A stretch of DNA of 64,000 nt from Zygnema circumcarinatum SAG 698-1b (Eukaryota > Plantae > Zygnematophyceae): the NCBI GenBank assembly GCA_037447605.1, contig CM074804.1, positions 2,232,001 through 2,296,000 of the forward strand, given 5' to 3'. The notes under the pieces are model-generated. The model was not told where the DNA came from. It saw nothing but the letters and a program-made list of their open reading frames with translations, and searched no databases. Of the stretch, positions 16,850 through 62,019 are shown in pieces. Both the position numbers and the translations under genes were made by a program. Numbering within the stretch: position 1 is the stretch's first letter; every line of letters begins with the position of its first letter.

Positions 16850-19800
16850 TCAAAGAGCTGACTGCCTCTCTGCGAGAATCCTCCGGCCCTGATACCTGCA
16901 CCCGCCGGCACAAAGCACATCACGAACAAGGAACTTTGAGTCATGCTTTCATGACTTTTTCTCTGTCATGCTCACTGCCCTCTAAAAGATGCATTGCTGC
17001 TCTCTTCAGCGATCCGACTACTAAAAAAGTAAATCCTATGCCAAAAATGAATTCTCTTTCCAGCCGTTGGCAGAGCCCCCAGGGAGCGGGCGCGCACCGT
17101 CCGAGCATCATGGCCGTCGCCTGCGGATTGGTGCCGGGCGATGTGCGCCACGTGGAGCCGTCGATGACGCGGAGGGACCGCGCGCCTGCGAGGCGGTGCT
17201 CGGCGTCCACGGAGTCCCCCCGCCGGCACCCGCCGTGGAAGTGCCAGAGGGACCCCACACTGGCCTGCTCACAGTGCCTCGCAAGGACGGGAGGGAGGGA
17301 GGGAGGGAGAGAGGGAGGGAGGAACCAAACTCAACTCCTCGCTCAGCTGCTGTAGTGCGGGCTTTGTGCAGGGGCTGCATGCAGTGCTGTTTCGTGAGAA
17401 ATGAATTGCATGAAGCCACTTTTTATCTCACCTTACACCACTGGGAGGCCTCTGTGTAATTGGTGGGATCAGGAAGGACAGGAATTGATCCAGCGTATTG
17501 TCCTTCGGGGATGACTGCAAGCTCTGGATTGAGGAACCTGCATTCAACGAAAAACGGATATGCAAAGGAATGCTTTTAGCAAGATAATTGTTCGATGCAC
17601 TTGTCGTCAGCAACAAAATACAAATTTACATATTTAAAAAGTCGCTCATGTTGGCTTCACAGTTTTTGACGAATAGAGAAAAGTAAATTGTTACCGCAGT
17701 GATTCCGGAACCGAGGTGTATCGGTAACTGGCGAGGGCTGTGGAACTGAGCAGTTTGGCGAGGACGCGGGAGCCGTTGACGCACGCTTCTATGTTCTCGG
17801 GAGTGCTGTAATAGTTGTACTGAACTGTGGGGTTCTGTGTGATGTCCGTGCTATTCAACGTCAGAGTCCCCCGGGAAGTCGGACGCAATATCTGAACAAG
17901 AATGCAGCGTGTGTGCTATAATCAGAAGCCGCCTTTTAGGGACACATTTAAGAGTTTTCGTCGGAGCCTTCTCTCCGAAAGGGTCACTATAGACGAAAAA
18001 TGGAAAAACATTTACAAAATCGAATAAGTAAGCAGCTAATAAATACTCTTCGATCAAGTAAATATATTGCCTATCCACATGACGGACCTTGCTATAGAAA
18101 CTCCCTGCTTGATTCAATTGTCTGCGCAAAGCGGCCGGGAGGGCTGCTATCTTGGCTGCTGCGAGAGCGATGCTAGTGTCGTTTCTTTCCGAAGGCATTA
18201 GCGTGCCGGTCACCCCCATCTGCGGAAAAACTGTCGAAGCATTTCCTCCGCTCCCTCCCTCGATGATCGTTCCATACTCGGAAATACCAACCACCTGCAC
18301 TCCCCCAGCCACCATGCAAATCGGCCTCTTTAACTGGTAGCTCTCAACTACTATTTTTTGTGCACAGGCTTCGATTAGTAGTAGCGAAGACATAACTTAC
18401 AATTCTTTAAACAGAAACACCCGCCATCACTGCAGAAAATTTAGAAAAATACATGTTTCAGATTGTCGTAAGAGGTACTCACCGTAGCCGAAGATAGATC
18501 CAATGGAGTTGGCGAGGGTACAACGATACTGTTCATGGGATTGTCGGTGATCTTCTGTCCAATTGAGGGCAAGTCAAGTACAAGGGGAATCTTGTGCTTT
18601 GCCAACTCTTCCACCGGCCCAACTCCACTGAGCAGCAGCAATTGTGGAGATCCGAGTGCTCCGGCGGCAAGGAGAATTTCCCCTCCTTCCTTCACCAAAG
18701 CTACTTTTGTCACCCCAGAGCTGTCTGTGAAGTTCACTCCGATAGCCCTTGGGCTGCCGTCTGCATGCACCAATAGAATAGCAGTATATTACCTATTTGG
18801 ATCATCTGTGCGAGGTAAGTAGCATCCTGACAGGGTTGTAACGCTTTAAACCTGGCATCTCACTCTTCAGACCAAGAGATTTCTCTAGCCACTAGTTTTA
18901 GATATATTCTAGCTTGAGATATTCAACATTTCTAAAAGGCCTCCTCGTGTCTATTTTACCTTCTCAAAAATAGTGAACGGCTTATAGATATTTCTCACCT
19001 TCGAGACTATCGAAAATGATTCGTTGAACAACGGCTAAAACGTACACCAAGAGGTTTGCAGGATCTCCAGAACGCAGGAGGTCGGCAGAGGTGTGCCGAA
19101 ACCCGCGACTATCGAAAAGTGTGTTCCCAATCTGCACATAATTTAATATCTAGAAGAATTCTTTGCTTTAGAACCGATCCCAGCCACCCCTCCTCCATCG
19201 CCAAAATCTTACCTAGAACTACTAATTTAGAGCTAGTTTCCGGGTCAGTTGAAAAAACAAGCTTCCTGTTTAAAGAACTGCGAGTGGGGTGATAAGAGTG
19301 AAGTGGCACATGCCTTTGTCCCCAGAATATGCTCCTTTGTGCGGCCGTTGAATGGAGTCACTCCAGCCTCCAGCAGTCCATTTTGTGTCGCATTCTGCCA
19401 TGGTACTACCATGGGATCGAAAACTATCCTGGATTCGACCCATTCATAGGCGTCTTTCACTGCCTCCAAGTCCCATCCCGTTTGCTGAAGGAATTCCGGA
19501 TCAGCGTGACTGCAGAATTTGACGAGAGGGAATGGAAAGTGAAATTTTCAACGAGCTTCAAGGTTTCCTGTGTTTAGTGTCAGCACCACTTCACTGCATC
19601 AATTTCATCACATGATGCTATATCAAAGTTCTGTTGATCGCTAAACAAAACCGGAACGGTAGACGGAATTCCTCTAATTATACATCATTTCAAACCAATA
19701 TGAAATTATACCTGTAAAATCCTGCGTTTATGGAGCTTCCGCCGCCTAAAACCCTTGCACGATGTTTGTAGACGCCATCGACAGATTGGAACCGCTGCGC

Positions 19801-21061
19801 TGCATTTGTTGTCAGAACGAATGGGAATCCTTCCAAGCGATACACCGAGGGCTGCGACAGAAAAAAATAACCACGAATCACTCAGACGAGAAATTTCTAG
19901 AACGGGAGTGAGGAACTGAAGAACAATACCACATTGTGACTGCAACTTCACCGAATCGAACAAGCACAGGATGAACTTGCACTTCAGGTATAAGTCAGCA
20001 ACGTATAATTCTTCCGTTTGAACCTTGATTTTGGGCTAGATTCTTAATGAAATGGAAGGAGTGGACATTGTAAGTGTTGCAAATAATATATTCTTATGCT
20101 GTCGTATCCATTTTTGTCTTTTAACTTTTATTGAGTCTTGTCTTTTGCTGCCATGTGCCTTGTATGCTGCCACTTACTTTTGTCGCCTAGTTCTAGCTGC
20201 ATTGTATATTAGCAAACTTAGGACATTGTATAAGCACCTCATTGAATAGACACTTTCTTTTTGTGTCATTTGTTCTCCATTCTCATTGTGTGCATGCAAT
20301 GTCTACTCCTTCCATTTCAATATGAAACACACTCTGAGAGAGGAGAACAAATGACACACGAAGAGAAGTGTCTAATTAGTGAGGTGCTTGTACAACGTCC
20401 TAAGCTTGCTTATATACAATTGAGCTAGAGCTAGGAGACAAAAGTGGCAACATAGATCTAGCCTAAGCAAGGGGCGACCAGGTGTAAGCACATGGCCGCA
20501 AATGACAAGGATTAATAAAGCTAAAATACAAAAAAAATATACGATAACATAAAAATGTCTTACTTGCAACAATTCTAACATGAGACCCTTGCATTCTTGC
20601 ATACAACAGGGCGTTAACGACATGAGCAGCCGTACGGGAGGTTCGGAAGAGCAGCACCTGATCATAAGGAACGCCACCTCGTTCCAGCACGAGCACAGAA
20701 TATTTCTCTGACAGGGTGGCAGCCAGCGGGCAGCCCGCAGTGCCTCCCCCGACGACAATATAGTCGTACACACTCACTGACGGCGCCTCGAAAGCATCGT
20801 GGATATATGGATCAACGTATTCCAAAATGACTGAATATTGAATATGGAAGAGGCAAAAAATCCATCAGACGTTCTGGCTTCTACATTCTTCTGAGTGATC
20901 GCTCAAGAATTTGGAAGGTCACACAGCACCCTGCCAAGCCATTTATGCGGTCTTCAAACGCACGGAGATTTTATAAAATTCCATATTTTTTCCTTCATAC
21001 CTTGAGAAAATGATTGCAAGAGCAGGCAAGAAACCAGCAGTCGGCCTCCGGTAGACTTCAT
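16850..21061 (-). CDS. HOTHEAD-like / mandelonitrile-lyase-like GMC oxidoreductase, 11 exons
   Basis: Exons 21061-21001 (signal-peptide-like MKSTGGRLLVSCLLLQSFSQ), 20830-20658, 19851-19712, 19509-19314 (GC donor), 19131-18999, 18760-18483, 18294-18088, 17891-17695, 17537-17432, 17264-17098, 16895-16850. Motifs: YDYIVVGGGTAGCPLAATLS (FAD), RARVLGGGSSINAGFY, AGALGSPQLLLLSGVGP, WHFHGGC, RVIDGS, SPGTNPQATAMMLGRY. Confidence 0.93.
20045..20571 (-). mobile_element. Solo LTR (Copia A-related) containing a second, oppositely oriented solo LTR at 20075-20322, in HTH-like intron 2
   Basis: Outer LTR flanked by TSD ATTCT (20040-20044 and 20572-20576). Inner LTR reads TGTTGCAA...TTTCAATA. Both share blocks with the Copia A LTR (e.g. 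GGAGTGGACATTG in both; GGTGTAAGCAC...GCCGCAAA in the outer one). Confidence 0.75.
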
Positions 21062-22534: not shown

Positions 22535-24426
22535 TCAGTTGACCAAACGCATCAGAATTCCATCCACCGTTATTCCTGGCCCATAGCCAAGCGCCAGCGT
22601 CCACGGGTTTCCGGAAGCGCCCACGTTGTCCTTGCGGACCTTGTCCAATACAAACAGGATTGTGGCAGCAGCCATGTTTGAGTAGTCGCGCAGAACATCC
22701 CTGCCACAACCAGTCACAGCTCAGTCAACCAGCTTCCGCTTTTTGCTTCTTAGAGCAGGTGGAATGCGGGTCTCTGGCTGGTCAAAGTCAGCACTCACCG
22801 GCTTGCTTGCAATTTTTTAGCGCTAAGTTTGCAGCCCCTCTCAGTGGCATCCACGACCGCCTTTCCTCCAGGATGCACTGCCCAGAGGAGGTCCTTCTCA
22901 TAGTCAATGTCGTTACCCACCAGCTTGCGGACGAAGGGGTCCACTGCTCCAGCTATGAGCTGCGCTGCCAGAAACGTGAAAAAGTCAGTGTCTTTGATGT
23001 AGGAATGTAAGGAACAAATAAGAGGGGGTGAAAGTGAGAGGGCGTACACGGGGGACGTCCTTGCTGAGGCCGGCAACCAAGCCTGTGCAGGACAGGCGAG
23101 CTGTGATGGCTTCGTCGCAGTTAGGAATGTATGAAGAGGCTGTGCGGTGCATTTGGAAGATTGGAGCCTCTTCCTTTGTCGGGTTGCAGCCAATAACCAT
23201 TGCTGGATCATCGCGTCATTCTGAGTCAGAAAGCTTCTACCAATGGCTTCGGAAGTAAAGTTCCAGAGAAAAAATGCTACTTACGTCCTGCCATAAAAAA
23301 TGCGTTTAGCTCACCTCCTGCTCCGTCACCGAAGATGATATTGACGATTATGTTGTTTATAGGGTTCTCAGGGTTCAACGGCTGCCCGTTAACTGAGTTC
23401 ACTTCCGAACACACGATGAGAACGCGATTCGAAGGATCAGCAAGAGCGATCTCACTGGCTGTCCGCATGCCAATGAGGCCGGCGTGGCAGCCCATGTAGG
23501 AGACAAAAAAGTGCTTCGTTGTGTCCGGAAGACCGAGTGACTTAATGAGGCGAAGGTCCAAGCCTGCACAAAAGGTCAGAAGGGCGTGACTTAGATCCAG
23601 TCTAAAAATCTGACCAAAGCGTCAGAGTGGCGTCAGGGTGACATTGTTTTCTGAAGGAAATTGCACTAACCAGGACAGAGCATCCCAGAGGATGAGTAAG
23701 TAATAATGTGGGTGATTTTGGACTTGTCATCCCCCCAGTCGACGATGGCCTTCTCGGCTGCCTCTTGGGCGAGGTCCACGCCAACCTGTTCGAACAGCTT
23801 CAGACGATCATCCAAACTCGGGGCACCAAAATTCACGAGGTTGGGGGAATTGAAATAATCCTCCTTGTAGAACGCCAGATGGCGGGTGCTGATTCCAGAA
23901 GAATCGTCTGCAAAACGCTCACCCGACATCAAATGCCATATTTCACACGCTATAAGACTACCGCAAGAAAACCTACCTCCCTTTCAGAATATAAAGGACT
24001 AACAAAACAACCCTTTATAAGGGTTACATTCAAGCATTTGAAGCATGGACAGAGTAAACGATAACGAGCATAGGGTGATTCGTATGCCAGAAGGATTTAA
24101 TTTCACTGTGCTTGGAGAACGAAAAAGTGCGTACTGATTTTTTTAGCCAAGCTCCTGACGCTGGGGTCGTCAGTGAGCCTGTCCAAGAAGTCAGCCGTGA
24201 AGTCCGACTGCTGCCACTTTCTATCCGGAACGGCAGTTCCGATTCCTAGAACATGAGACAGGGCCGCACTTTTAATCGCGCTTTCTTTCTCAACGGTGTA
24301 GTTGGAAGCGTCCAAATGAACTCCATTGATCTTTTCAGAAAGTCCATTCGCTCCATTCAAGTGCTGAGCACCGTTAGGCACAATCGGGGGAGCCACCTCA
24401 ACTGAAGAGAGATCTGTGCGGCCCAT
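22535..24426 (-). CDS. Type III polyketide synthase A (CHS fold; ORS/alkylresorcinol-synthase-like), 6 exons
   Basis: Exons 24426-24135, 23907-23671, 23563-23315, 23202-23048, 22959-22799, 22700-22535. Cys-His-Asn triad in YMGC, WAVHPGG and YSNMAA; also FGDGA and GYGPG. Confidence 0.93.
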
Positions 24427-26761
24427 AGTGAAAATCTCGTAAATAAAAAAACTCAAAATAATACAGGATAGAGATTCAGGCTGCTCAAATCCCTGCTTAA
24501 ACTGTGTTCCTGCAACTACTTATCCTGAAGAGGTCTGCAGGATTGCAAGAGACGCACTTTGCCCGATGAATGCGATGATCAGCGGCAGAGCACATATGTG
24601 GGAAGGCGTAGTGGAGAGGTCAGCCGGGATCGAAAGAGACAAGGCCTGCAGACGTCACAGAAGCCCTGACTCGGCAGTCAGCCATTGCAGAGTGCGCGAG
24701 GGGTCCTCGAGACAGTCCTCCCTCGAAGAACACCCCCGACATGGCGGAGCCACCCTCTGCTGTCAGGAGGTCACTCTCTGTGCGGAGGTCAGGGGTCGCT
24801 CCTCGGTCGCAGCGGCCCCCCGCCACGGCAGTCTCGGAGCACCCGCCGAGGTCGCCATGGACCGACCCTTCCTCTCCCCCTCCCTCCCGTCAGTTTCGAG
24901 TCGAGGCACGCGAGTTCGAACCTCCAAAGAGGCGCGGTGCCAAGCGACATTTTGTACGTTGGGGTACAAAGGGGCTCTGCTCGCTGACGTGGACAAACTT
25001 GGATGAAGTTTCTCAGTGCAAACTCGGCTGTGACATGTGCGGCCACGTGGCAATCGTAGGGGAGCCCACGCGGGCGGGGGACATTAGAAGGGCGGCCACC
25101 GACAAATTTGGCAAATGAACTGCGCTTTGACGCGTGACAAAGTCAAGGTCTCTTCAGGCTGACAAGGTGGCGACACGTGGCCCCATGACATGGCGGCCAC
25201 CGACCACGCACGCTGACCGAATTTTTCTTTTTTCTTTCTTGTCAGAAACGACACGATGATGACATATCGGGCGCTTCCGTTCCTATGGTCCAACTTGGTT
25301 CAACTTTGCTGACGTGATTCAACCCTGCTGATGCGATTTCGCACGTGTGAACAGCCGAAGTTCAGCAGTGGACGAACCTCGCTTCGGCGGTTGGCAAACT
25401 TTTCGCCTCGGTTTGCAACTCGGGCGGTTCATCAAGTTGAACCTTGAAAGCGCACCCCCAGTACAGTAGTTGCCTTGCCTCCTTCAGCAGGTTGCAGCTC
25501 CGCAGTTGCGAACTGAGCCTCCTCCCATGGCATAACGTTTGCGTGTAACGGAGTCAGCTAGCTTTGGAGGAAAAGTAAATGTATTCAAGGAAAAGTTTGA
25601 ACAACGATGTCAAGTGCCTCCCACTGCGTACTGAAAAAACGGCCTTAGGAGGAGGCAAACAAAAAATGCCTTTTTGAAACGGGGACCCCAAGTGCCTTCT
25701 GCAAACGCAATTTGCAAGATCATTTTTTTATTATTAGCAGACTGGTAGTGCCTCCACCTGTCAATCTCTAAGGTGACCGGCATTATGGTTGTGGTCCTTG
25801 TCAAACCGATCCCACAGCGGTCGTAGCGAGCATCCGGGGGCGCCCGAGTGCTTCCGCCAGGGCGCTGCTCGCCAAGCTCTTTGTTACAGCAGCAGGAGGA
25901 GCGCGCCAGAATTTGAAAAGATGCTCGGCTTTGATGGTTGAATAGCAAAAGCACACTCAAATTTCAGATTTTTTCCCTAACTCAGTGGTCAGCCCGAACT
26001 AGAAGTCTGCACCTTTTGGCAATGACTGGCCCTTTTGCACTGCTAACCGTCGTGGCCGGCCTAGGCCAGGGTGACGGTTTTGCAAGTTCCACGGCCGCAA
26101 TTTGAGTAATTTGAGCAATTTGAACAAAGTATGAAGCTACGATTTTAGTAGCACAACGAATACATAGAGTACGGTGCTTGACGTGCTTTCCCCTTTTTCA
26201 CGTTCAGCCCAAAGAAGGCGTATTAAAAATTTATTGCGTATTTTTTAGTGTGTAGTTTTTTCAAGTCTTTTGAGTGTTGTAGAGTGTTGTGGCGTGTCTT
26301 GGAGAAGTGTGGAGTGAATGCTATAAAATGTTACGATTTGCTATGAAGTGTCGTTGGACACTTGTGATGATCGGTTCCCCGTGGCTGTACATGTTGTTGC
26401 AATCCGTGCACATTTCATGGCATCGTAATCGCGCGATCAATGCCAGACCCATCTGACCGATCTGGCATCGGGCTCACAACGGCCAGGGCGAGGCCTTCTC
26501 GACTTCCCCTTGCGCGCTGATCAAGCGCCCCTCTGCCCCCGCCCGCACCGCTGCCTCGCAGCAGCCCCTTACTTCTCCGCTGTTCCGCCCTCCCTCCCAC
26601 TCCTCTCCCTCTCCCTCTTCCTCTCCCTCCCTCCCGCCATGTCCTCTCCTCTCCTAGACCGCTTTCGGGCCGTCCGACGCAGCGCAGCCGTCCGTCCATC
26701 GACCCGTTCCGTTCCTGCGCAGCACGGAACGCGTCGGCCATAGAGCCGCCCGTGTCGTTCT

Positions 26762-27077
26762 TATTGAAAAAGACGGAGTGGACATTGTACGATCAAAGTG
26801 AGGACAGAGAGAGTTGACACAAAAAGACAGATGTGTGATTAACGTGGTAAAAAGTACAATGTCCTAATCTTTTTTATATACATTGCGGCTAGAGCTACAC
26901 GACAAAGGAGTGTGGAACTAGCCTGAGTAAGGGCGGCTAGGTGTAAGCACAGAGCCGCAAAAGCACAACTAAACTAACAGAGAAAGTACAAGCTAAAAGG
27001 ACAGCCAGGTGAAAGTACACGTGGCTGGGAAAACGACAAAATAGTACGACAAAACTGAGAATGTCGGATTCTCAACA
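26762..27077 (-). repeat. Copia A 3' LTR
   Basis: Near-identical to 54481-54796 (two substitutions seen by eye). Confidence 0.95.
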
Positions 27078-29799
27078 CTCCCTCTCATTCGAAAGTGTGG
27101 AGTCCGGCAGAAGAGCGGTGAAGCTCAAAAGCTGGCCGATGTAAGGCCTTGGTAAGAAAATCGGCGGTCTGCTTGCCGGTAGGACAGTAGAGGAAGGTAA
27201 GGGTGCCGTCTTCAATCTTGTCCCGAGTGAAGTGGAACTGAATGTCGATGTGTTTGGTACGTTGATGGTGCACGGGGTTTTGCATGAGGGCAAGGGCACC
27301 TTGAGAGTCCGTGAATGTTAGTGTATGATAGTTAGCATGTTTTGTTGGAACATTAGTTTTGTGTGTTTGTGTTGTGTGTTTCCTTGGCAGCGGTGCGCGC
27401 CTAAGTTAGTAGGCGGCGGTACGGACATTTGGTCGGTGGAAGAGGCGCGGCGCGGCGGAGTCAGAAGTGACGAGGCGCGACGCGACGAATCGGAAAGTGA
27501 CGTGGCGCGGACGCGGCCGCGGAGCGAATTGAAGATGTGGCGCGACGCGCGAATCTGCGCGCGAATCGGAAGTGACGCGGCGCGGCGTCAACCTTTGGAT
27601 TGAACGATTCGGACTTGACGCGATGCGGCGTCAAAATGTCGGCGCGCGATTCATCATTGTACAGAGCGGCGTCAGATGTCGGTGGCGTGCGACGACGCGG
27701 AGTTTNNNNNNNNNNCACCAACAAGTGGTATCAGAGCTCATGGTGACGCGGAGGACCACGTCAAGTTCAGTATACCGGCGTTTGATGGGCAGGATTACAA
27801 GGCATGGAGATGGAGGTTGGTGCCTTTGCTTGTGGGCAAAGGGTTGCTTGGGTACGTTGATGGCAGCATCAAGGCGCCGGAGTTACCGGTTGGAGCCTCA
27901 GCGGGCGAAAAGCGGTCGGAGCACGCGTGGCTCGCCGCGATGGAAGATGCAGGACAACAAAGCCACTGGCTAGCCTTGATTGTTATATGGCGTAAGAGAG
28001 GAAGTCCATCTACATCTTTGTATGATCACGAAAACCTCTCATGCTATGTAGAGTGTCTAGAGGAGATGTATGATGTGAAAGACCAAATGTGACCTCGTCA
28101 GTCTTTACACTTTCGGCTAAGCGAGATGAAGAATGACGGAGGAGAAACTAGAAGCTTATATGTGGTCAGATTTGATGCATTGATGGAAAGGTTCATAGCC
28201 TTAAGGAAACCATTAGATGCAGACCATAAGATAAGCCAGTTTCTAGGGGGTTTGCCCAGGAGATTCGAAGTTTCAGTGGCAGCCTTGAGGACAGTTCTGA
28301 CCAATACCTCTATGGCGGCTTGAACAAGTTAAGCATTAGGATAAAGGAGGAGGATTAGATTGAGTTAATGCGGCCAAGAAGAAAGGTCTTTCAGCGTTGC
28401 ACACTTCGACCCGAATGAGAGGAGGAGGCGCCCAGTCGGCCCAGGAGAAGCCTTCGAATGTGACGCCAAGCTTCCACGTGTGGCAAGACCGGCCACTACT
28501 CGGTATTTGTTTCAGAACTCACTTGATCGGAGAAGGGAGGAAGCGGCTTCATCCGGTAAGAAGGAAAAGAAGAGGCGTTGGCGGCACTTGTTTGAAGTGC
28601 AAGAAGAAGATCCTAAGGATTAATTTGCAGAGTAGCGATTGAAACAACCTCATCTTTGTGAGAATCTTGAAGCGATTTTACGTAGGGAAGGATTGAGCGA
28701 GAGGACTGAAGCGACGTGGGTGATTGATCGGCGCTTCCACGCATATGTGCGAGCACATCGATGTTCTCAAGCTGGCTGACTTGGAGAAGGCTTCATTTCG
28801 GTTCATTATTGCTTAGGTGAAGGAGTCACGTGTGGCGAGAATTAGGCGTGAGGATGGTCCTCGAGCGGCTTTCGATCATCAATGAAGGCGATGTTAGGGC
28901 GCTCATTGGTGATGATGTAGCCCCCTTTGAGCCTCATCGCGAGAATTTCGTAATACGTGAGCCAAGTGTGCAAGAAGGAATCTGATGTTGTTTGAGAGAA
29001 GTCATCGTGGCTATCATTGGCCAGGAGAGCGGTTATTCGGGGATTTATGAGAGAGAGGAGGGCATGTATTATCTTGATTATAAGAGAGAGAGAATCATGA
29101 GGAGGAGAGGTGCATGCGGTTGAGAGGAGAATCTTTGTAGATGTAGCATAAGTAGACTTGGACACTACACCTGAGGCATGAAGCTTTTTAGTGAGAGAGG
29201 GCTAGTCAGGTGGACTAGACACAGTGTGGAGAAGGGCTTGGGGTTGCCGAGAATGTGTGGAGGCAAAGGCGCTGAGGGCAGTCGTGAGGAGTGGAGCGAG
29301 TCTGTCCCGGTAGCGAGAAGTTGGGCGGTACATTGACTTGTGTGGCCCGATTACACGGCGACGATGGCGGGCCCGAGGTATAGATCACCTTCATTGACAA
29401 TATTCGAGAAGATTTGGATTACACTCACGAAGAACAAGTCAGAGGAGCTTCCGGAGCCTTTTCGAGGCCCAGGCCCCGAACAGTATTTGGAGACACAAAG
29501 AGCGGGGAGGCCCGAAGGCTGAAGGCGCCGTTCGGACAATAATTGGCGAGAGTTCAAATCGGAAAGGTGCATTCACAGAAGAACGTGGTATAAGGCATGA
29601 ATTCTCAGCCCACTATTACCTGGTATGGAGCGGTGAGCATTCATGAATAGGACATTGAGGGGACATGGCGGCGGACCATGTTGATTGATTCCCCCTTTCC
29701 GGCTTCCTTTTGGGGAGAAGCAGTTTCTACGGCTGCTTACATTAGGAACAGATGTCCGTCTTCTGTTCTGAAAGACCAGGTCCCTGAGCAGATGTGGAG

Positions 29800-49167: not shown

Positions 49168-52100
49168 TTCTGCCCGGTCCAGCGCTCTGATACCACTTGT
49201 TGAAACGGTGCCCCCTGACCTGCTGGAGGATGCCTCTGATGAGTGACATCTCTCTCCACGCCTAGATCAGAGACTTCACTCATGAAGCACAAGATCTCTA
49301 CCTACAAAGCTTAAAACAGCCCCCAAGCAAAGAATGAAAGACAGAACAAGTAAAAGAAAATGAATCTAAGAGAAAAGCACTAAACGGCCTAAAACTCTTA
49401 AATTCAGATTGAAGTACAAGCTGCAGCCATATGCTCTCCCTCCCCGCACCTCTACTCCACTACAAGACTACCACCCTCAAGTCAGGAGGCTCCACCACAT
49501 TCCCGCAAGTTACACCTACCGCTTCCTCGCGTACTACACCTCGTGGTTAAGTCTCAAAGTTCTCCTCTTAATCTCTATACTTCAAAGCAACCATGGGCTT
49601 AATTACTAACCCCGCGACTCAGTTATCACACTAAGAGCGACTCAGCACACACTCAGCGCCGATTTCGCCACGCCGCTCGCGCCGACGTTCCGCCACGCCA
49701 CGCCGCCTTCGCTTTCAAGGCCCACCACGCCACACGCCTTTAGTTGCGCCGCCGCCACGCCAGCGCTCTAGGTTGCGCCGCCGCCACGCCACATCACTCC
49801 GCCGCCATTTCCCTCAACTCCGTCAGCCACAGCCGCCGCTCACATTCTCGGGTAGACGGACTCTTTGGTTCCCGGACGGGCCTCCTCGCTTACTCGGGCG
49901 CGTCTTCGGTGTGTCTTTATGCACACCTCTGAACTCCTAGCTTGACACTAGTTCGACCCTAGCTCTACCGCCTAGCCCTTCTAGACTCCCAAACAAACAC
50001 ATGCACTCACTAACTATGTACCACTAACTAATGTACACTAACAAAGATTATTATTAAGGAGTTTTAGAGCCGAGAGCTTTCTCTTATCCTTTTCTCTCTG
50101 TTATTTCCGCTGTGCATATTCTGAGAGGTTCACTCTGTGAGTAAAATGGGCTATGAGTGAATGTGAGAGTTTGGGAAATGTCATCATCGATTGGAACGCG
50201 AACTCCGATGGAAGGTGATGCGAGTGGAGAAGCCGGCAGCAGTGGAGGAGTCCCTCCACCAACAGTGAAGACGGTGGTAGCGTGAGGGGGAGGGAAGGTG
50301 AGGTTGGAGAGGAGGGATCGGAGCCAAACAGCCTCTTTGGCAGCAGTGGAGGCGGCCATATACTCTGCTTCAGTGGAGGATGTGGCCACTGTAGGCTGCT
50401 TCCGAGAGGACCATGAAATAAGGCCACTGCCCAAAGAAAAACACGAGCATTAACAACCGACGCCTTATGTCGATCAGCTGCCCATCAAGTCAGATAGCCC
50501 AACGAGGGTGGGGGAGCCAGAGGAAAAGGTAAGGCTCAGGGCCTTGGTGCCCTGAAGGTAACGAAGGACACGCTTGGCAGCGCTGAAGTGAGCAGAAGAG
50601 GGGCGGTGAAGGTATTGGCTGAGCTGCCCGACGGCGGCAGCTAGGTCGGGCCGAGTACACAACATTGCATACATAAGGGATCCCAAGATGGATCGGTAAG
50701 TGGCATGCTCCGTGGGGTCGGGGGAGCCAGCCACAAGGGAGGTAAGGTGAATGTGGGCGTCCAGGGGGGTGGAGATGGGGTTGCAAGCGGCCATCCCAAA
50801 ACGGTCAAGGAGATCGGAAACATACTTTTCCTGACTGAGGTGAAGGGTCCGAGCAACCCGCATCTCAATGACGGAATCCCAGACAACACCATTGCAGTTC
50901 GGGCCAGGTCCCACATTATGTCAAAAATGGTCGCTGGCGAGCCGCTTGACATCCCAAATGGGGTGCTGAGGACCACAGATAATGAGGTCATCAACGAAAT
51001 CCGCAAGGATGCAGGAGGGTCCGGACCGCGGCCAATGGAAGATAGATGCTTCCAAATCGGCGGCCGATGCGAGTGAATACCGGCAAGAAGGACAAAGATC
51101 CAAAGTGCGGTTCCGTGACGCTGGTGCTTGCCGAGGTCAGAGATGGATTTGTTGAGCGGCGAAGAGGTGTTCGGTGCCGGAGTGACATACCCGCTGGTTA
51201 CGATAAAAGACGTTTTGAAGGTCCCCGTGAGGAATGCGGTTTCGACATCCATCCGTGAATTTCCCAATCGTGGGTGGCGGAGAGAGCAAGGAGGACGCGA
51301 ATGGAGGTGAATTTGGCCACCGGGGCATAAGTTTCGGTGAAGTCGATGCCTTCAAGCTGAGAGAACCCCTTGGCTACAAAACGGGCTTTATAGCGGTCAA
51401 CCGAGCCGTCGGATTTTTGTTTGATTTTAAATACCCATTTAGAGCCGATGGCGCGACGACCGGGTGGGAGGGGGACAAGGTCCCACGTGTTGTTTTTCTG
51501 AAGGGAGAGGAATTCAGCATCAGCGGCAGCTTTCCAAAGGGCTGCGTCAGGGGTGCGAAGGGCGGCAGCAAAAGTAGGGGGGGCAGACGAGGAGGTGATG
51601 AAGGCCATGGCGGAGGAAAGGAGGGCATGGGCGGCGGTGTCGATAATTTTCCACGTGGGTCGCCGATCGCGAGTGCCGTGGCGGGGGCCAGGGCCGGGGG
51701 GAACCGGAGGGGAGAGTGCCGGAGGGCGGGGTGGCGGGGAGGCCGCGACGGGTGAAGGGGGAGGGGAGTCGGGTAGGCCGGGAGAAGGCGCGAGGGGGAA
51801 AAAGGGAGGGGGGGGGAGGTCTGTAGGCGGAGGGGAGGGGTCCGCGTCCGGCTCGGGTGAGATGGAAAGCTCCCTCTGAACAGAAGAGGGAGGGTCGAGC
51901 AGAGAGGACGAGGGGCAGGGGGGGGGAGCGGGGGGAGGGGGGTCGACGGAGGGGGACGCAGGGCAACCGGGCGGGAGGAAGGGGATGTGCGACCGGGCGG
52001 ACAAAGGAATGTCACGCCAACGTGATGGCCGCGGGGAGGGGAATGCTATCCAATCCGCCACGTGAGGTGGGGGAACTGTGACGGCGAAGATCGGGCTTCT

Positions 52101-54480
52101 ACGTGGAGGAAGCTCTGCAAGGGTGTACGCAATGCGGGTCGGTGGCTGGTAATGAAGCCGCCGACGGTGCAGAGCCTCATTAAATGCGGCGTCGCGTGAA
52201 AGTACAATTCGATTTGTCGCACAACACCAAATACGATAGGCCTTGGACGTAAGCGCGTAGCCAAGAAAAATGCCGCGTACGGCCCGCGGTCCCCATTTGC
52301 CAGACGACTGGACGAGATCTTTGTACCAGGCCTCGCAGCCAAAGATACGGAGGTGGGAGACGAGGGGTTTGCCGCCCGCCAGCCCTCGTGAGGGGAGGCC
52401 GTGTGAGGAAGGGCGAGGTGGGGGAAAGGCTCCGGCAAGTGGCCGCGGAGATGGCTTTCCAGAAGCCATGTGGAGGTCGGCAAAATGAAGCATAGAGCGA
52501 GCCATGTCGAGAATGGTGCGGTTAAACCGCTCGGCGACTCCATTTTGCTGGGGGGTGTAGGGAGCGGTAGTCTGATGGGTGATGCCGTGAAGGCGAAGGT
52601 ATTTGGAGAAGGCGGTGGACATAAACTCGCCGCCGTTATCAGTGCGAAGGGTCTTGATGCGGCGACCGAGAAGGGTCTCTGCACGGGCTTTGAACTCTTG
52701 GAAGCGGGAGAAAACGTCAGACTTGTGAGCGATGGGAAAAACATGGGAAAAATGAGTCGCTTGGTCAATGAAAGTGACAAAGTATGATGCGCCGCCGAGG
52801 CTAACATCACGCATAGGGCCACAGACATCAGAATGAATGAGTGCCAGAGGCTCAGAGACAAGGGTGGAGCTTGAGGGAAAAGGCAATCTGGTCATTTTTC
52901 CTTGAATACAGCCTGAACAAAAGTCTAACTTTTCGGTAGAGAAAGAGTCTAAACCTAACACTAAGCCCTGTCCGAGAGTTCTGAGGCTACTTTCAGCAAG
53001 GTGGCCAAAGCGGAGGTGCCACCGAGCAAAGGTAAGGGGGGGGTCAGTGGTGTGAGCATGGGCGTGCCCAAGGGAGGCTGCAAAAGATGTAAGGGAAAAC
53101 AAGCGGCCGGTTTTGCGGCCGTGCCCAACTACAGCGTCTGGGGTGAAGAAAGTAACCCCGTCTGGCCTAAAAAGAGCTGAAATGCCTAAAATCAGGATGG
53201 AGGCTACTGAAAACAGATTCTTCGCGAGGCCATCCACCAGGTAGACGTCATCGATGATGAAGCGCTGGCCGTCAATTAGAGTGGAAACCTGGCCGACATG
53301 CGTGGCAGTCAAGAGCGGTTATCCCCTAAGAAAATGGTCATGGGGAGAGGGAGGGGAGAGAGCCGAGAGAACCAGTCACGACGAAAAGTTAGATGATGGG
53401 AGGCACCCGAGTCAATAAGCCAAGTGGAGTCAGGGAGAGAAGGGTCATACCCAAAAGGGTCCGCGGCCAGAAAGGCGTGACCGAACTTGGGAGCACCATA
53501 GACGACACCCGGGGTGGGAGGCGGGCCGGCCGGGGGGGGGAAGCCGGGGTGAAGAGAGGGGTGTAATGGCGGGCGCGCTGGCGGACCAAGGGAGCGTAGG
53601 GAACGGAGGAGGGTTGGCTACTCTAGCCGACGACAAAGTTCTCAAATGGGACCGAATCGCAGGGGTTAAATCGGAGGGCTGCGCGATATTTGTACGCGCC
53701 GGGCCGGCGGAGGTACGACGGGCGCTGGGTAAAAGTCGGCGCTTCCTTTTGGCCGAGCGGACAGTTGTCCTTTACGTGAGTCTGTTCCTTGCAATACCGA
53801 CAAAAGAGGGCGCCAGGAGACTTGGGCGGTGGAGGACCAGATCCGAAAAGCGCGGACGCGTGGGAGGATCTGGAGGGGGTGGAATCTTTTTCCTCCTCGT
53901 TCAAAAGAAGGTCGGTCAGATCAGCGACGGTTAGTGAGATCGAGGCAGCATCAATGGACGAGATGAAGGACCGGAAAGAGTCGGGCAGCCCGCCTAAAAG
54001 ATTACAGATGATCTCATCATCATGAACTACGCAATCAATGCTGCGAAGCCGTCTAGCAAAGGATTTGACGCGGTCAGTATATGTCAGCATGGTTTCAGAG
54101 GATTCCTTTACGCAGTTAGTGAAGGCACGCCGCAAACGGAGTTTGTGAGACCACTGGCGTCTGCATTTCATTGGTCGGCGAGTCCAAGCCGCCGTGAGCT
54201 GGTAGCCACGACGGTCCGGATGAGACTGGCGCCAATGCCGAAGTGTGATGTGAGGAACGCCTCTTTGTCGCAGGTTTTGTCCAATCGGGCGATTCTCTTC
54301 AAGGTGCCGCGTCGCTGGCCGGGCGTGGAGTGGAAGTGGCAAAGGACAGGTCTCTAGACCAGTAACGACAGACCACAGATTCTCTTCCTCAAAAAGCTGC
54401 TGGCACTGAAACTTCCAGTCGTGCCAGTTTGTCCCATCAAATTTTTCAAGCGCATTTGAGGCATGAGTGGGCCCATAACC

Positions 54481-54796
54481 TATTGAAAAAGACGGAGTGG
54501 ACATTGTACGATCAAAGTGAGGACAGAGAGAGTTGACACAAAAAGACAGATGTGTGATTAACGTGGTAAAAAGTACAATGTCCTAATCTGTTTTATATAC
54601 ATTGCGGCTAAAGCTACACGACAAAGGAGTGTGGAACTAGCCTGAGTAAGGGCGGCTAGGTGTAAGCACAGAGCCGCAAAAGCACAACTAAACTAACAGA
54701 GAAAGTACAAGCTAAAAGGACAGCCAGGTGAAAGTACACGTGGCTGGGAAAACGACAAAATAGTACGACAAAACTGAGAATGTCGGATTCTCAACA
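54481..54796 (-). repeat. Copia A 5' LTR
   Basis: TGTTGAGAA...TTTCAATA on the minus strand, followed directly by the PBS. Confidence 0.95.
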
Positions 54797-55665
54797 GTTC
54801 CTGCGCAGCATGGAACGCGTCCGGCGATAGAGCTGCCCGTTCCTGCGCGCGCGCCGTCGCACGCTCCGCCACAAAACGGTTCGAAACGGAACGGTTGGGG
54901 GTTCCATGGCATGCCGTGCTCGCAGCGACTGCCAGGGGACTCCCTTCCGTCCCCGGGGGCCCAAAAGGACCACCGTACGGCACGAGGGCAGGCGCCGGGC
55001 GGTCCCCCTCGGTCCCCTCGGCCCCCTCGGTCCCCTCGGCCCGAGGCCGTCCCTCGGGTCCCCCCCCGCCGATCGCCGACGGTGACGAACAGTTGCAGGG
55101 GCAGCGCGGCGCAGGCCATGGAGGGAGGGAGGCAGGCTCGCTGCAGGGCTGGGGAAGTCCGCCCCGTGGAGGTGGCTGCTGCTGCTTCCCGTCCTGTCCG
55201 CTGAGCCGACCCTTCGTCTGCAGGTCCATCGAACTCTCAGCACCATGGCGGGCGAGAGGTCATGCGGCTGCTGTTCCCTCCTCTCGCGCTTACACCACGC
55301 GGTCAAAGGGTTGACTCACTGCGAGAAGATCCTTACTCTCGACGGATCTCTGATGGCTGGAGTCTTCATAGTTCTCTCTGCAGAATATTTCCACCTCACG
55401 GTAGTGACTTCGCCCTCTTCTCGACATCCTTCATAGCTGTGACTCTACCCTGGTTGCAGCAAGGACCTTCTACTTGGCCGTTCGGAATTGGCCTTGCAGC
55501 TTCGAGGAGTAAGAATCTGTTTTATTGTACTGAAAAATAAGTTGCATATTTTTTACCCAATTCGCTATTCATCCCTTTATATTTCTATAATTAGCTTCAT
55601 TCTTTGAAGAAAAGTAACAATGGCTGCCACTGATGTCCTTTGTTTTCAGGAGACCTTTGAGGGAT

Positions 55666-57897
55666 ATGAATGAATGGAGGAGCACAGGTCCAGAAGCAGC
55701 ATTCAATGTGGGAGAGAGGGCGGAGGAGAACAACAGCCTTGCGCATGTATTGGGGATAGCCACAGGAAACCCGAAGCGTGTCGTGCAGCAGGAGGATTTT
55801 GCAGAGGAATTTCTTGAGACTTTGGAGGGATGTTCTCCTAGTATGAAGGAAATGGCCAAGAGAATCAGTAAGCGCAGTAAATTTTGTATTTTGAACCTCT
55901 TGTATGTTTGATACTGTGGTCGCGTTTACAATGTGGATGGATCCGGCAGCGTAGTCTGTCTTGGCCCTACTTCTTGGTTCTTTTATGGTTTACGGAGTAG
56001 GAAATATAAAATCCTACAATAACTCATATCATTGAACGATATGAACGAGAAAAGGGATGAGATGCAGTATAGCCTTGTCCTTTCGCATGTGAGTAAAGTA
56101 TCAGAGTATTGTTTCCGTTTGCGGCTTTTTATGACAGTCTTGAAATTGAGGGGACTTATTGCTGAAGGCACTTCTGCTATTTTCATCTGTTGTATTTTTT
56201 GATTTGTTTATACCTCTATATACTTTGCAGACAAGGTCTCTGGGATTCGCACACGCTACCTTGCCTATTATTGTGACGATTACGCAAAAAACCCCAAGCT
56301 TATGACTCACGGTGCACCATCCTTGAATGATCGATTGGAGATGTTCGAAGCTGCAAGTGTGAAGCTTGGTCATGAGGTGGCAGAGAAGACCCTTGCGGAT
56401 TGGGGTGGTGACAAGTCCAAAATTACACATGTCGTCACCTTTTCATGTTCAGGGATGATCTGCCCTGGTGTGTAGATCTGAGCCCACTCCTTTGAGGTCA
56501 ATGCCATTTAAGACTGACGAGTTCCTTCCATGATTCTACATTTCATATGCACTGTTCCAGTGGAAAATATTGGTTGCAGGATCCGCTCATTGGATCCGTT
56601 TATTTTGGCTGTTGGCTGGCGACATCTACTGACTTTTGAGAAAGTTCGCAGGTCTGGATCTTCGACTCATCAAATCACTCGGTCTATCTCAGAAAACAAA
56701 GCATATGTTTGTCTCCTATATGGGCTGCCATGGTGGCCTTGTCGGCATGCGGATGGCATCGGAGATAGCAAAGGCAGACCCTTCTCATCGTGTCCTGATT
56801 GTGTGCTTGGAGCTGAGCTCAGTGAATGCTCATGCTCCAGATCCAAGCAACCCCATGAACAACATCATCATCAGTATTCTCTTTGGAGACGGGGCTGCAG
56901 GTAGGTGACTGAATTTTTAGCAGTAATGTGTTTGGTAAGCCTTAGTTTCTTTTCAATGCCTTAGCGAGTGCTTCGAGTGAGTTCACAACTCCAAAGATGA
57001 CCTTGTCGTTTGTGACTTTGATTGCGAGAGACATGCCCCTAAAGGCTGTTTAGACCCTAGTCTTGTGTCTCATGCGTGTGTGCGGCTCAGGGATGGTGGT
57101 GGGGAGCCATCCCACAAACTATGAGCGTGTGATCTATGAGATCCATCAAACGAATTCAACTTATATTCCGAACAGCGAGACGGCAATTATGGCTCGACCT
57201 TCGGAACAGGGCGAGATTGCAACAGTGGGCAAGGAAGTTCCGTCGGTATGTACTTTCCCATCCTCTTCAGATGATGAAACGGTCTCTCTCATATGTATTG
57301 GGTCTGATGCTCCATACTGCGCCAATGTCTCGTTCATGTCTTCTCAGCAGTGTTGTACATCCTTTTCAAGTGACAAAATCAAGTTATTGATTCGGTTTAC
57401 CTTTAGACATACAGCTGGTCGTTGGAGCAGTAGATCCTTTCGTTCGCGAGCTGGTGGGCGATCACTTGGACTATGAGAAAGACCTGCTTTGGGCAGTTCA
57501 TCCGGGAGGAAAAGCGATCCTAGATGCAACTCAGAGGGGATGCAGACTCAGCCCCGCCAAAATGGAAGCGAGCAGGTGAGTCAGAGGGCCCGGCAGGATA
57601 CAATATGACCTGTATTTGACAGGGCCTAAGATTGGAATTGACATTGGCTGACTTAGCCTCATGATCCTTGACATGAATTGGGGCTGTTTGACGGAAAAAG
57701 ATGTTGACAGCCACATGTGCACTCGTTGCAGAGACATCTTGAGGAGGTACGGCAACATGGCTTCTGCCACAATCCTCTTTGTGCTCGACCAGATGAGGAG
57801 GGATAACGTGAAAGCTGCAGCGAAGCAGTGGACTGTGGCGCTAGCCTTCGGACCCGGCGTCTGTGTGGAGGGCTCGCTCCTGCGCTTAGTGAATTGA
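55666..57897 (+). CDS. Type III polyketide synthase B (paralogue of A), 6 coding exons
   Basis: Exons 55666-55867, 56231-56467, 56652-56900, 57091-57245, 57415-57575, 57732-57897. YMGC, WAVHPGG, YGNMAS, FGDGA, AFGPG; intron positions and phases identical to PKS A. Start codon uncertain because of an upstream acceptor at 55649. Confidence 0.92.
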
Positions 57898-58772: not shown

Positions 58773-61700
58773 ATGGAGGACGACGACTCGTCTCTGCCCT
58801 CTGCTCCGGGGGAGAGGTGGAGGGAGAAGCCATGGCGTCTGGCTGCAGGAGCCGCCGTCGCTGGCTGCATTATTATACTTATTTTGGGAGAACGCATGGA
58901 GAGCCTGCTGAAACATGGAAGAGGCTCCGTCGGTCAGCAGGATCTGCAGGGTAAGGATTATGATGAGGGTCACATCAAACTCAATCAGGATTTTTTATTT
59001 TCTGGTTAAACCAAACCACTGAACCACTGTGATCCTGTGTGTCGCTTAAACATGATTACGCAGAAGAAACGTGGGGCCATCGGCTCCGACTCATGGCAAC
59101 GGATGAACAGATTATGTCAGAGAGTGAAAAAAACAGTAAACTGGGATATCCTTCTAAAGCGTTGAGGTTGAAGCTGAGTGAGCTTTTGGAGCTTGTCCAA
59201 CAGGAAATGACAAGGTTCCGCAGCAACAAATCTGGAAAATTGAAGGAGGTGAAAGCGGGAGATAAAGGAAATGGTGAACTCGATTTAGAGAAGAAGCATG
59301 CAAATGCCGAAGTATTGAAGGAGGAAATTTCAGCTATGGAAGAGGAAAGCACCGCTTGGAGGGAATTGGGAGATTTAATGAAAGCACAAACCGCGGAAAT
59401 TCATGAGAGACTCGCTTCGGGTAAAGAAGGATTAACAGCAGCAATCCTTTCTGAACCTGATGGGCAAATAGGAGCGATTGAAGGTGAAGAAAGCTCCCTT
59501 GGTGTAAGTGAGAGGCCGAAGGAAGCTGCAGCCTTGAAGGAAGCGTCTGACAAGCTCGTGAAAGTAAAGAGGGCATTGATTGTCACCGCTCAAAACATGA
59601 CTGAGTATCTGCAGGTTGGAGAAGGTTGGGGAAGTGGTGAGGAAAGAGTGGATGGCGGATGCGTTAAAGCTGGAAAAGGGCCCATGTATGGACGATCAGC
59701 GACACGGTCCTTGAATTGGCAGCCAGAGCCTGGCAGGTGAGATCTCGAGGACATGTCAGAGGCAGTTTCTTTAGTATTCGTTTTTTGTGTAGAACCTTCG
59801 ATTCAAAGTATCAAATGGTTTCGCTCTCTGCTGCATTGTGTGTTCAAGTTCTCTAAATGCGAATGAACTTCAAGGGAAATCAAAGAAGCGAGGTTTGTAT
59901 GTGCTCTCGAATCATCTCTTGTGTCTTTTGAACTTGAATAATCCGAAAAAAAATAATTTTTTAAGTACGTTATAATTCTGAACAAAATTTATCCTGTAAC
60001 TTAAGCCTCCTGTGAGGGCAACGTGCCTGTGGCGGTGCAGGTATTTGCTTGCAATGTGTACCATGGGGCAGATGAGTAATCGCATCATGTGTTTTCATTT
60101 GTACATGGCGTTCGCAGCCCTCCTTAATCGCACCCTTATTGTCCCGATGGCGGACCTTGGATCCCACACAAAATACGATATGAAAACTGTCTTTGACATT
60201 GAACATGCGAGGGACTGCGTCGGCCAAACCACAATGCTGACAGAGAACGAGTATCTGAGAAGCACCAAACGTAGGGAAATCGAGGTTAAGGTGAGAAGGG
60301 AGCAAATGTCGCAGCTTCTGCATCAAAAGACTTCGTAGCCATCCATTATCCACTGACTGTTTCTTTTTATCCATTGACACCGCGCTTTATTCCCTCCTTG
60401 CAAAAGGTACACTGTTTGTGGCCCGGCGCTCCAAGAGTCGCAGCCTGCGGATTCCGTAAAGGCTGGAAGCAGCCTGAACTGAAATGCCCACTTATAAAGC
60501 TCCTGGGCCCCCCTGTGGCTGGAAAGTTGAAGTTTAATCCGACAGAAGAAGAGCTGCTTACAGTGTATGGAAACCTTGCAGACTCCGTTATCAGGTATGC
60601 GGTCCCTGGGATCCTCTCCTCTCTTCCCTCCCTGCTTTTCTCTCCTATTCTCGCCTCCTCTGCCTTACCTTAGAACGAAGCCTGGTGTTAGTTTGGATCA
60701 ATTCATGTTTCAGCTATGTATATGGCACTTTTGCAAGCGCTAACGCCTGCTCCCATGTCAGCGTGCTTGAGAATTGAGTATTTCATTCTGTTAGGTCAGA
60801 GGGGCGAGGATGAGGGCAGCTTTGGTGACTTGCTGTACGTCGGTTACGGCAATCTCTCTTACATGAAGGCTCTTCCAAACGGACCATTCAAGATGAAGGA
60901 CCCTTCCTGCAAACTCATCATTCAGGTGATCTCTTCCACTCTTCACCTTTCAACGATATGGCGAGCTGCTCACAGAAAGTTCTTGCTAGGCTGAAATGAA
61001 TATAGGGCAGTTGTAAGTGAAGGTAGAGAGATTGCTTGGCCTCCTCCTGCAGGCAGGGAGCGATCTATGGGCAGCTGCAAGTGCAGCCATGCGAGCCACA
61101 TTGGGGCAGCGCTATCTTGGGCTGCACATTCGCCGCGGAGACTTCAAGACATACTGCCAGACTCGCGGAGGCGCATGCTTCAAACCTCTCAGCCAGTACG
61201 CAGCCTGCATTGCCGCGAAACTCAACGCGCTCGGAACGTGAGTCGTGCTTATCCTCCATTGGATCCTTCTTTTTCAGGAATTCGGAACGCAGCAGATGGA
61301 CTGATCCGCAGTAGAAAGCAACAGATGGAGCAGAGTCATGCGCCAAATACTGAGAGTTTGTTGTGGAGGGGACCTGCTGTTGTGCTGGATACAAGCAGGA
61401 GCGTAAGCACAGTGTATGCTGCCCACAATGCGGAGAAGAGCGAGATGCACTACTTGGAAAAAGCCATTCTGGTTAGTGAGTTTTTGATGCGAAGCTGATT
61501 GATTGTGTTGTTTTCCCTGCTGTTTATTACACTTGTTTTTTTCAACTATTTGAGGACTCTGTCTATGCATTTCTTGCTCCTCAACTCCCCCCTCTCTCTC
61601 GCTCTCTCCTCTCTCTCTTCATCTCTCTCTCTCTCCCTCTCGCCTTCCAACTCTCTGTCTCTGTTTGCCTTCGTTTGCAGGCGCAGACGAAGCGGCCCTA

Positions 61701-62019
61701 CGCCTTCCTGACTGCGTCCGATCTGTTGACCCGCGAGTCGAAGAAGATTTTGCGCCGTCCTGAAGTCTTGGCGGCGTTTGAGAAGATTGTGGCGGCCTCG
61801 AGCCGCGTCTTCCTCGGCACCGTCCACTCTACATTCACACTCGACATTTTCCGCATGCGCAAGGGCTTGGGTACGGGCACGTGCCTGGACGATGTCATAT
61901 GTGGAAAAGACGCATCGGAGTTGGCCGAAGCTTTGGAAGACTATGGCCCGGAGACAACGACGGGAGGTAACTTTGCCAAGGGCTGGACTGCAGGAAGCAG
62001 CTCGTCAAGTAAAGGGTAG
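58773..62019 (+). CDS. O-fucosyltransferase-family glycosyltransferase (type II membrane protein), about 8 exons
   Basis: Exons approx. 58773-58950 (TM helix), 59064-59736 (coiled-coil-like stem), 60041-60290, 60407-60594, 60820-60925, 61053-61237, ~61312-61471, 61681-62019. Motifs GQMSNR..AALLNRTLIVP, LGLHIRRGDF, FLGTVHSTFTLDIFRMR. Confidence 0.82.

Follow-up and report, generated by a model that had tools for sequence, protein, structure and literature searches.

Do four neighbouring genes in the alga Zygnema circumcarinatum SAG 698-1b make up a biosynthetic cluster for surface lipids, or does a pair of polyketide synthase (PKS) genes simply have other genes beside it? The question is raised by a stretch of 64,000 nucleotides (contig CM074804.1, positions 2,232,001 to 2,296,000; hereafter the window, in whose own numbering all positions are given). 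Here, an original prediction made from the letters alone had seen, as consecutive genes, a HOTHEAD (HTH)-like GMC oxidoreductase, two ORS-like type III PKSs (PKS A and PKS B) and an O-FucT-family glycosyltransferase (GT), and had read them as a scaffold-plus-tailoring cluster. We found all four genes, in that order. With a rough probability of 70%, however, the sequence evidence points to two PKS paralogues whose neighbours are unrelated to them or, at most, loosely related, in a zygnematophyte-type streptophyte alga. The locus holds real genes in a tidy arrangement and is, formally, a candidate cluster only, a cluster being defined here as at least three linked, non-homologous biosynthetic genes that are co-regulated and serve one pathway.

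Exons in this eukaryotic window are short and its introns are of the GT-AG type; genes were found via six-frame open reading frames (ORFs), motif scans, exon-wise family scans and local alignment. Family and PDB searches used single exons; joined translations were used only for local alignment, the maximum-likelihood (ML) tree and the ratio of nonsynonymous to synonymous divergence (dN/dS). The four genes are listed below (HNL, hydroxynitrile lyase).

16850-21061, minus strand: HOTHEAD/HNL-type GMC flavin oxidoreductase, 567 aa, stop-free and intact, in 11 exons (21061-21001, 20830-20658, 19851-19712, 19509-19314, 19131-18999, 18760-18483, 18294-18088, 17891-17695, 17537-17432, 17264-17098, 16895-16850).
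22535-24426, minus strand: PKS A, ORS-clade type III PKS, 419 aa, intact, in six exons (24426-24135, 23907-23671, 23563-23315, 23202-23048, 22959-22799, 22700-22535), all introns GT-AG.
55633-57897, plus strand: PKS B, ORS-clade type III PKS, 400 aa, intact, in six exons (55633-55867, 56231-56467, 56652-56900, 57091-57245, 57415-57575, 57732-57897), all introns GT-AG.
At least 60042-62019, plus strand: O-FucT-family (PF10250, POFUT1-like) gene with several short exons and a stop codon at 62017-62019.

Read 5' to 3' along the window, the order is GMC (minus), PKS A (minus), PKS B (plus) and the O-FucT-family gene (plus), strands that the original prediction had not given. PKS A and PKS B stand head to head across 3.2 kb; GMC lies downstream of PKS A in the same orientation, at a distance of 1,473 bp, and the GT follows PKS B. 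The spacing between the two PKS genes is 2,335 + 836 = 3,171 bp without an inserted element of 28,035 bp, and the four-gene span minus that element is 17.1 kb. PKS, GMC and GT are thus linked within 17 kb after removal of transposable elements (TEs), subject to joins across two assembly gaps. The distances first proposed, about 1.5, 3.2 and 17 kb, agree with these values, whereas the 0.9 kb proposed between PKS B and the GT is not confirmed: the distance is 1.2 kb to an ORF starting at Met 59093, or 2.1 kb to the first O-FucT-matching residues. Position 16850, from which the locus had been counted, is the last base of the GMC stop codon.

The two PKS genes carry the clearest evidence. Chal_sti_synt_N and Chal_sti_synt_C were found exon by exon in Pfam (53.6, 54.9 and 32.5 bits, against a cut-off of 27 bits), both being confirmed on the minus-strand exons, and the PDB gave matches to many type III PKSs. 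A motif scan placed HPGG at 22864-22875 (minus) and 57499-57510 (plus), with GNMAS also in PKS B, and alignment located the catalytic triad at Cys202, His340 and Asn373 in PKS A and at Cys183, His321 and Asn354 in PKS B. Six conserved blocks were collinear between the PKS A and PKS B regions (tblastx), and when splice sites were enumerated, a single GT-AG solution made sense for each junction, at positions identical in the two genes. The junctions of PKS A are supported further because a transcript-like contig from a relative (P0168, locus L012), 74% identical to PKS A, is collinear across all six exons. Between PKS A and PKS B, identity was 61%, the proportion of synonymous differences (pS) was 0.74, which is saturated, and dN/dS was ~0.1. 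The identity of 61% together with saturated synonymous sites indicates that the duplication is ancient, and because P0168 is closer to PKS A than PKS B is, the duplication predates that species split. The low dN/dS shows that both copies are under purifying selection; a pseudogene reading of either PKS was rejected on its open frame and on this ratio.

As to ancestry, ORS-clade members scored at least 277 bits in a profile search, whereas CHS-type proteins scored at most 234 bits; the former comprised Pohlia, Ceratodon, Physcomitrium, Spirogloea, Adiantum, Ceratopteris and further contigs. In an ML tree that included no ASCL sequences, PKS A grouped with P0168 (support 99/96), then with PKS B (98/94) and Spirogloea (99/98) inside an ORS clade (97/94), where the algal subclade was sister to the moss and fern members; the CHS clade stood apart at 100/100. 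Spirogloea is the nearest named relative of the two PKSs, at 60% identity, and the PpORS-like protein P0173 is only 42-44% identical to them. The label "ORS-like" given in the original prediction is borne out by this phylogeny and by the clear score gap from CHS-type enzymes, and its "early-diverging streptophyte" fits a tree in which Spirogloea is closest. On these grounds "ORS-like" is right as ancestry, and the product itself is a prediction from it.

ORS-clade synthases have been described as confined to charophytes and bryophytes (PMC11316218); our profile search also found members in ferns. The clade names that we recovered agree with those that Suh, Sraan and Ashton 2024 (PMC11316218) list under "bryophyte ORS" and "algal ORS", where the algal entries are Zygnema, Spirogloea, Mesotaenium kramstae and Penium, with Zygnema circumcarinatum models 1600 and 1602, and algae are reported to be without ASCL. 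PKS A and PKS B are new members of a known family, algal ORS genes having already been catalogued in the literature. PKS B exon 3, searched against 1.84 billion representatives, returned five close relatives only, either fragments or a Cymbomonas protein, and a scan of JGI metagenome contigs with the exon-3 profile gave zero matches. The Cymbomonas entry (P0001; C. tetramitiformis KAK3233920.1) is annotated as a single protein of 4,818 aa with 12 separate type III PKS-like stretches, and is either a tandem PKS array fused in prediction or a genuine multi-PKS protein. In addition, ENA metagenome scaffolds GROS21-1 (L004-L011) carry an ORS-clade PKS whose six exons are laid out alike and which shares 54-62% identity with PKS A and PKS B; by their sequence they point to an unsampled relative.

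Marker residues were read from an alignment in which P0173 has Q, V and A at the PpORS spacing, and correspond to Asn235, Ala294 and Ala303 in PKS A and to Asn216, Ala275 and Ala284 in PKS B. Of the ORS signature Gln218, (Val/Ala)277 and Ala286 (PpORS numbering), both proteins have Ala at the latter two sites. Together with the Cys-His-Asn triad and an N-terminal extension, these alanines are common to the PpORS clade and our pair. Conversely, PpORS has Gln218, where Asn occurs in PKS A, PKS B, P0168 and the metagenome fragments P0002-P0006, the six exons of our pair are another point of difference, and moss ORS genes have no GMC or O-FucT neighbour. Gln is also present at this position in Spirogloea, the ferns and most moss ORS-clade members, with Ala in Ceratodon 8G0202 and Pohlia 847. 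The Asn-for-Gln218 exchange may mark a zygnematophyte subclade with altered chemistry. Further, PKS B has AFGPG, whereas PKS A has GYGPG, an F-to-Y deviation from (G/A)FGPG, and PKS A carries SNMAA in place of GNMxx.

The GMC gene was described earlier as a HOTHEAD-like oxidoreductase, and this description fits. Both GMC domains are present in Pfam (GMC_oxred_N at 18444-18788; GMC_oxred_C at 17694-17915 and 16944-17330), and for the three exons tested the best PDB matches were Picea abies PaAOX1 (8S2Y), a plant AA3 glycerol oxidase, and Prunus hydroxynitrile lyases. Exon by exon, and in the PDB only, fungal alcohol oxidases fell far below the plant HTH/HNL/AA3 proteins. The N-terminus is signal-peptide-like, and the flavin adenine dinucleotide (FAD) motif GGGTAGC was found at 20733-20750 (minus) by motif scan, conforming to an N-terminal GxGxxG. 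Shared with Arabidopsis HOTHEAD, plant AA3 and HNL proteins are the N-terminal FAD motif YDYIVVGGGTAGCPLAATLSEKYSVLVLERG, the C-terminal WHxHGGC and SPGTNPQATxMMLGRY, and both Pfam domains. WHFHGGC and PGTNPQAT supply a His/Asn pair, aligned to residues 563-625 of 8S2Y; in GMC enzymes generally, the two residues of this pair have catalytic roles. The Asn in PGTNPQAT is kept, a motif common to PaAOX1, the reference HNL structures being 1JU2 and 3GDN (Prunus). We take HNLs to carry His at this Asn site, in which case the enzyme would be oxidase-type rather than HNL-type. By sequence the gene is assigned at family level, to the plant HOTHEAD/HNL/AA3 type, within which it would be HTH itself or another member. 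Intron 4 (19132-19313, minus) needs a GC donor (AAG|GCATGT), the sole non-GT donor among the 20 modelled introns. A 181-aa ORF at 17854-18396 within the gene had no PDB match, and a search with one GMC exon returned five fragments on contigs of at most 3.7 kb, too short for reverse synteny.

The fourth gene is less sharply defined. It was found by scanning all 87 ORFs of at least 40 aa beyond 57.9 kb, three of which carried PF10250, at 60042-60296, 61086-61175 and 61711-61863 (plus). These matches are collinear with profile positions 1-104, 170-200 and 275-324, a weak match in keeping with the proposed family; their individual scores of 22.8, 17.3 and 15.4 bits are each below the cut-off of 31.5 bits, and their rough sum over single exons, 55 bits, is above it. 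The first match also had a weak POFUT1 match in the PDB (E = 0.11) over its N-terminal GxxxN...LNRTLxVP segment. The longer ORFs of the region had no family match in Pfam, and a motif scan found none of the plant-type O-FucT motifs (NGGLNQ, HLRxExD and others). Upstream of the first match lies one further feature.

59093-59737, plus strand: coiled-coil-like ORF of ~215 aa starting at Met 59093, with no Pfam family at a meaningful score.

This ORF could be GT exon 1, or else a small gene of its own. Several in-frame GT-AG junctions would connect it to the first O-FucT exon, and for the whole gene such options are too many for one full exon model to stand out without a homologue. The gene is real and weakly typed, and its similarities indicate a protein-O-fucosyltransferase type rather than the usual small-molecule tailoring GT or UDP-glycosyltransferase (UGT).

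The space between the two PKS genes is filled by an insertion, with the following parts.

24427-26761: left part of the original PKS A-PKS B intergenic region, 2,335 bp, with no Pfam domain in ORFs of at least 80 aa.
26762-54796, minus strand: nested long terminal repeat (LTR) retrotransposon insertion, the outer element of Ty1/copia type, 28,035 bp.
27706-27715: assembly gap 1, 10 N, inside the outer element, 629 bp from the LTR and 3.3 kb from the PKS A start codon.
45685-45784: assembly gap 2, 100 N, inside the nest, 9.8 kb from the PKS B start codon.
54797-55632: right part of the original intergenic region, 836 bp, separating the element from the PKS B start codon.

This insertion is the 28-kb TE nest of the original prediction. 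Its outer LTRs are 316 bp long (26762-27077 and 54481-54796), differ at two positions (99.4% identity) and are flanked by the 5-mers GTTCT and GTTCC, which match at four of five positions (~1.6% by chance). On the minus strand follow gag (Retrotran_gag_2, 53626-54582) and integrase/reverse transcriptase (rve and RVT_2, 51201-53318); paired LTRs, a target-site duplication and the gag-integrase-reverse transcriptase order are those of an LTR retrotransposon. Inside are a second copia gag (37278-38426) and gypsy/chromovirus domains (region 38390-49166). Every Pfam domain between the PKS genes is retrotransposon-derived, and the idea that the nest hides further pathway genes was rejected because only TE domains occur there. 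The near-identity of the LTRs suggests that the insertion is recent. Its 3' LTR (26762-27077) faces PKS A on the same strand from 2.3 kb away, and its other end is 836 bp from the PKS B start; the insertion may change how PKS A or PKS B is expressed.

Neither gap touches the reading frame of any of the four genes. A paralogous TE copy (32575-32953) shows similarity up to 18 bp short of gap 1, and beyond that gap the similarity is not picked up again. The right edge of gap 2 is exactly where a repeat copy starts (45785-46439; 88% identity with 42133-42794), and the left flank has no counterpart. More broadly, 42133-44834 is collinear with 45785-48493 at 76-88% identity, the second copy starting at the edge of the 100-N gap; this pair could be a collapsed or mis-sized repeat. 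The scaffold, the LTR pair and the near-identical 5-mers suggest that the two halves of the locus are probably joined correctly.

We then looked for the arrangement elsewhere. In 17 loci around ORS-clade genes, four of them moss chromosomal loci, tblastn (E <= 0.1) detected no GMC or O-FucT homologue. Neither was present, by annotation or tblastn, in the 10-kb flanks of three Ceratodon and one Physcomitrium ORS-clade loci, nor on a moss-like ENA contig and four 7-9-kb metagenome scaffolds with a six-exon ORS-clade gene, nor in the 5.4 kb upstream of the PKS on metagenome scaffolds from a nearer relative. Conserved linkage, whose absence the original prediction had named as one of three refuting points, was lacking in these mosses and metagenome scaffolds. 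Of that cluster the adjacency is real, whereas support beyond adjacency was not found and the linkage is not conserved where testable.

Published systems offer partial parallels. In a kingdom-wide synteny study, type III PKS genes generally lay outside metabolic clusters, barley Cer-cqu being the exception (PMC8133574). Cer-cqu (W1) of barley and wheat, as cited there, is a beta-diketone wax cluster of a type III PKS, a lipase/carboxyl transferase and a P450, and no other plant metabolic cluster around a type III PKS has been published (PMC8133574). It resembles our locus in its surface-lipid theme and in the physical linkage of a type III PKS scaffold to tailoring genes, and differs in its other partner classes, its unrelated lineage and its genetic and biochemical proof, where the present case has adjacency alone. 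Land-plant sporopollenin synthesis involves ASCL/PKSA-PKSB, ACOS5, TKPR, CYP703/704 and an HTH-family GMC (PMC12309059, PMC9491461). There, one resistant lipid-phenolic polymer draws both on a type III PKS that takes long-chain acyl substrates and on an oxidase of the HTH family; however, the PKSs here are of the ORS clade rather than ASCL, the land-plant genes are unclustered, and neither an acyl-CoA synthetase nor a reductase nor a P450 lies in the window. In cutin, long-chain hydroxy fatty acids are acted on by HOTHEAD-family oxidases (bioRxiv 10.1101/2025.01.06.631446), HTH-family GMC oxidoreductases are needed for exine (PMC12309059), and mosses depend on ORS for an intact cuticle and for tolerance of dehydration (PMC11316218).

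Against this background, a true lineage-specific cluster is unlikely. In it, the ORS-type PKSs would make long-chain alkylresorcinols or alkylpyrones and the HOTHEAD-like oxidase would act in the same pathway, oxidising a hydroxyl of the alkyl chain or of the starter fatty acid (from an omega-hydroxy to an oxo or carboxy group); the products would enter a surface or zygospore-wall lipid-phenolic polymer, and the GT may or may not take part. Four intact genes of three enzyme classes within 17 kb of TE-free sequence, PKS A and GMC co-oriented 1.47 kb apart, the published cuticle or exine links of both families and the precedent of a PKS-containing wax cluster in barley all speak for it. Adjacency is nevertheless its only evidence: no linkage was seen at the four moss ORS loci or on the metagenome scaffolds, no known pathway puts an HTH-type oxidase after ORS, and the GT belongs with the protein O-fucosyltransferases rather than with the small-molecule UGTs. 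Moreover, the "tailoring" neighbour was picked post hoc, many enzyme families being equally suggestive, and by a rough estimate about a tenth of loci would have some "tailoring-type" neighbour. Because there is no evidence that GMC or GT acts on PKS products, we keep unrelated or loosely related neighbours as the default reading. Several points weigh against this default. The layout, in which each PKS is followed on the same strand by a candidate tailoring enzyme within ~1.5-2 kb, formally falls under rule-based cluster definitions; HOTHEAD-family enzymes and ORS are both barrier-linked, which makes the adjacency thematically suggestive; and the loci that lack such neighbours belong to mosses, whose separation goes back hundreds of millions of years, or lie on short scaffolds. 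A bolder proposal holds that the ORS-type PKS pair and the HOTHEAD-type oxidase would form a co-regulated linked module for oxidised alkylresorcinol or alkylpyrone monomers of a hydrophobic surface or zygospore-wall polymer, a clustered forerunner of the dispersed cuticle and sporopollenin pathways; we regard it as decidedly improbable.

Two other explanations concern the PKS chemistry and the locus itself. The pair may have left ORS chemistry behind, moving for instance to UV-screening phenolics or pyrones, so that "ORS-like" would describe ancestry only. We consider this possible, and more doubtful than not: Asn replaces the diagnostic Gln218 in both PKSs, P0168 and P0002-P0006, PKS A shows the GYGPG and SNMAA deviations, the two PKSs differ at cavity positions equivalent to CHS 132 and 194, and a literature search turned up no characterised algal ORS-clade enzyme, but Ala277 and Ala286, which open the long-chain tunnel of ORS, are kept, and membership of the ORS clade is well supported. 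It is very improbable that GMC with PKS A and PKS B with the GT are not truly adjacent, the scaffold having merged two insertions of one young TE family. Two N gaps do lie between the halves, paralogous TE similarity stops at or before each, and a young family could give near-identical LTRs at separate loci. On the other hand, only 2 of 316 positions are mismatched between the two LTRs, the matching 5-mers are as expected for a single insertion with target-site duplication, the gag-integrase-reverse transcriptase run is oriented consistently with the LTRs, and a head-to-head pair is a common result of inverted duplication.

For a paralogue pair with unrelated or loosely related neighbours, the sequence would tell the following history. 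PKS A and PKS B are an ancient inverted pair of ORS-clade paralogues with intact Cys-His-Asn. Judging from moss PpORS, the starter of each enzyme is most likely a long- or very-long-chain fatty acyl-CoA, which would be extended with malonyl-CoA and released as a phenolic lipid of alkylresorcinol or alkylpyrone type. Their shared 3.2-kb upstream region appears to have been invaded recently by a copia LTR retrotransposon carrying nested elements, now 28 kb. An intact gene for a putatively secreted HOTHEAD/HNL-family FAD oxidoreductase lies downstream of PKS A, and a POFUT-like O-FucT-family gene downstream of PKS B.

No further biosynthetic-type domain was found by Pfam upstream (1-16850) or within the nest, and domain scans of the window found no acyl-CoA synthetase, reductase, P450 or methyltransferase. 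Extra pathway genes upstream of GMC were considered and rejected, the only gene there being of MutL type: pieces of a MutL/PMS-type DNA mismatch-repair gene with HATPase_c_3 and DNA_mis_repair domains lie at 3300-6200 (plus), and the 479-aa mismatch-repair ORF at 4762-6198 found no relatives in a word-indexed protein search. A SNORD36-like C/D-box small nucleolar RNA matched at 11155-11237 (plus; 36.9 bits against a gathering score of 30 bits). The region 13400-15600 has ~60% GC and long overlapping ORFs on both strands with no Pfam match. Beyond the GT, a tRNA gene of ~85 nt lies at 62993-63078 (plus; Rfam, 60.8 bits); ARAGORN assigned it no anticodon, which suggests that an intron probably lies inside.

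Since moss ORS is needed for cuticle integrity and dehydration tolerance, the ORS clade bears on the origin of plant water barriers. In this clade, the locus documents an ancient, conserved ORS paralogue pair and an Asn-for-Gln218 variant, as well as a TE that inserted recently, 836 bp upstream of PKS B, with possible effects on the regulation of that gene. If GMC acts in the PKS A pathway, the locus would provide a directly testable handle on a lipid-phenolic barrier pathway that preceded land plants, and Cer-cqu would then be the only other known plant cluster with a type III PKS at its centre.

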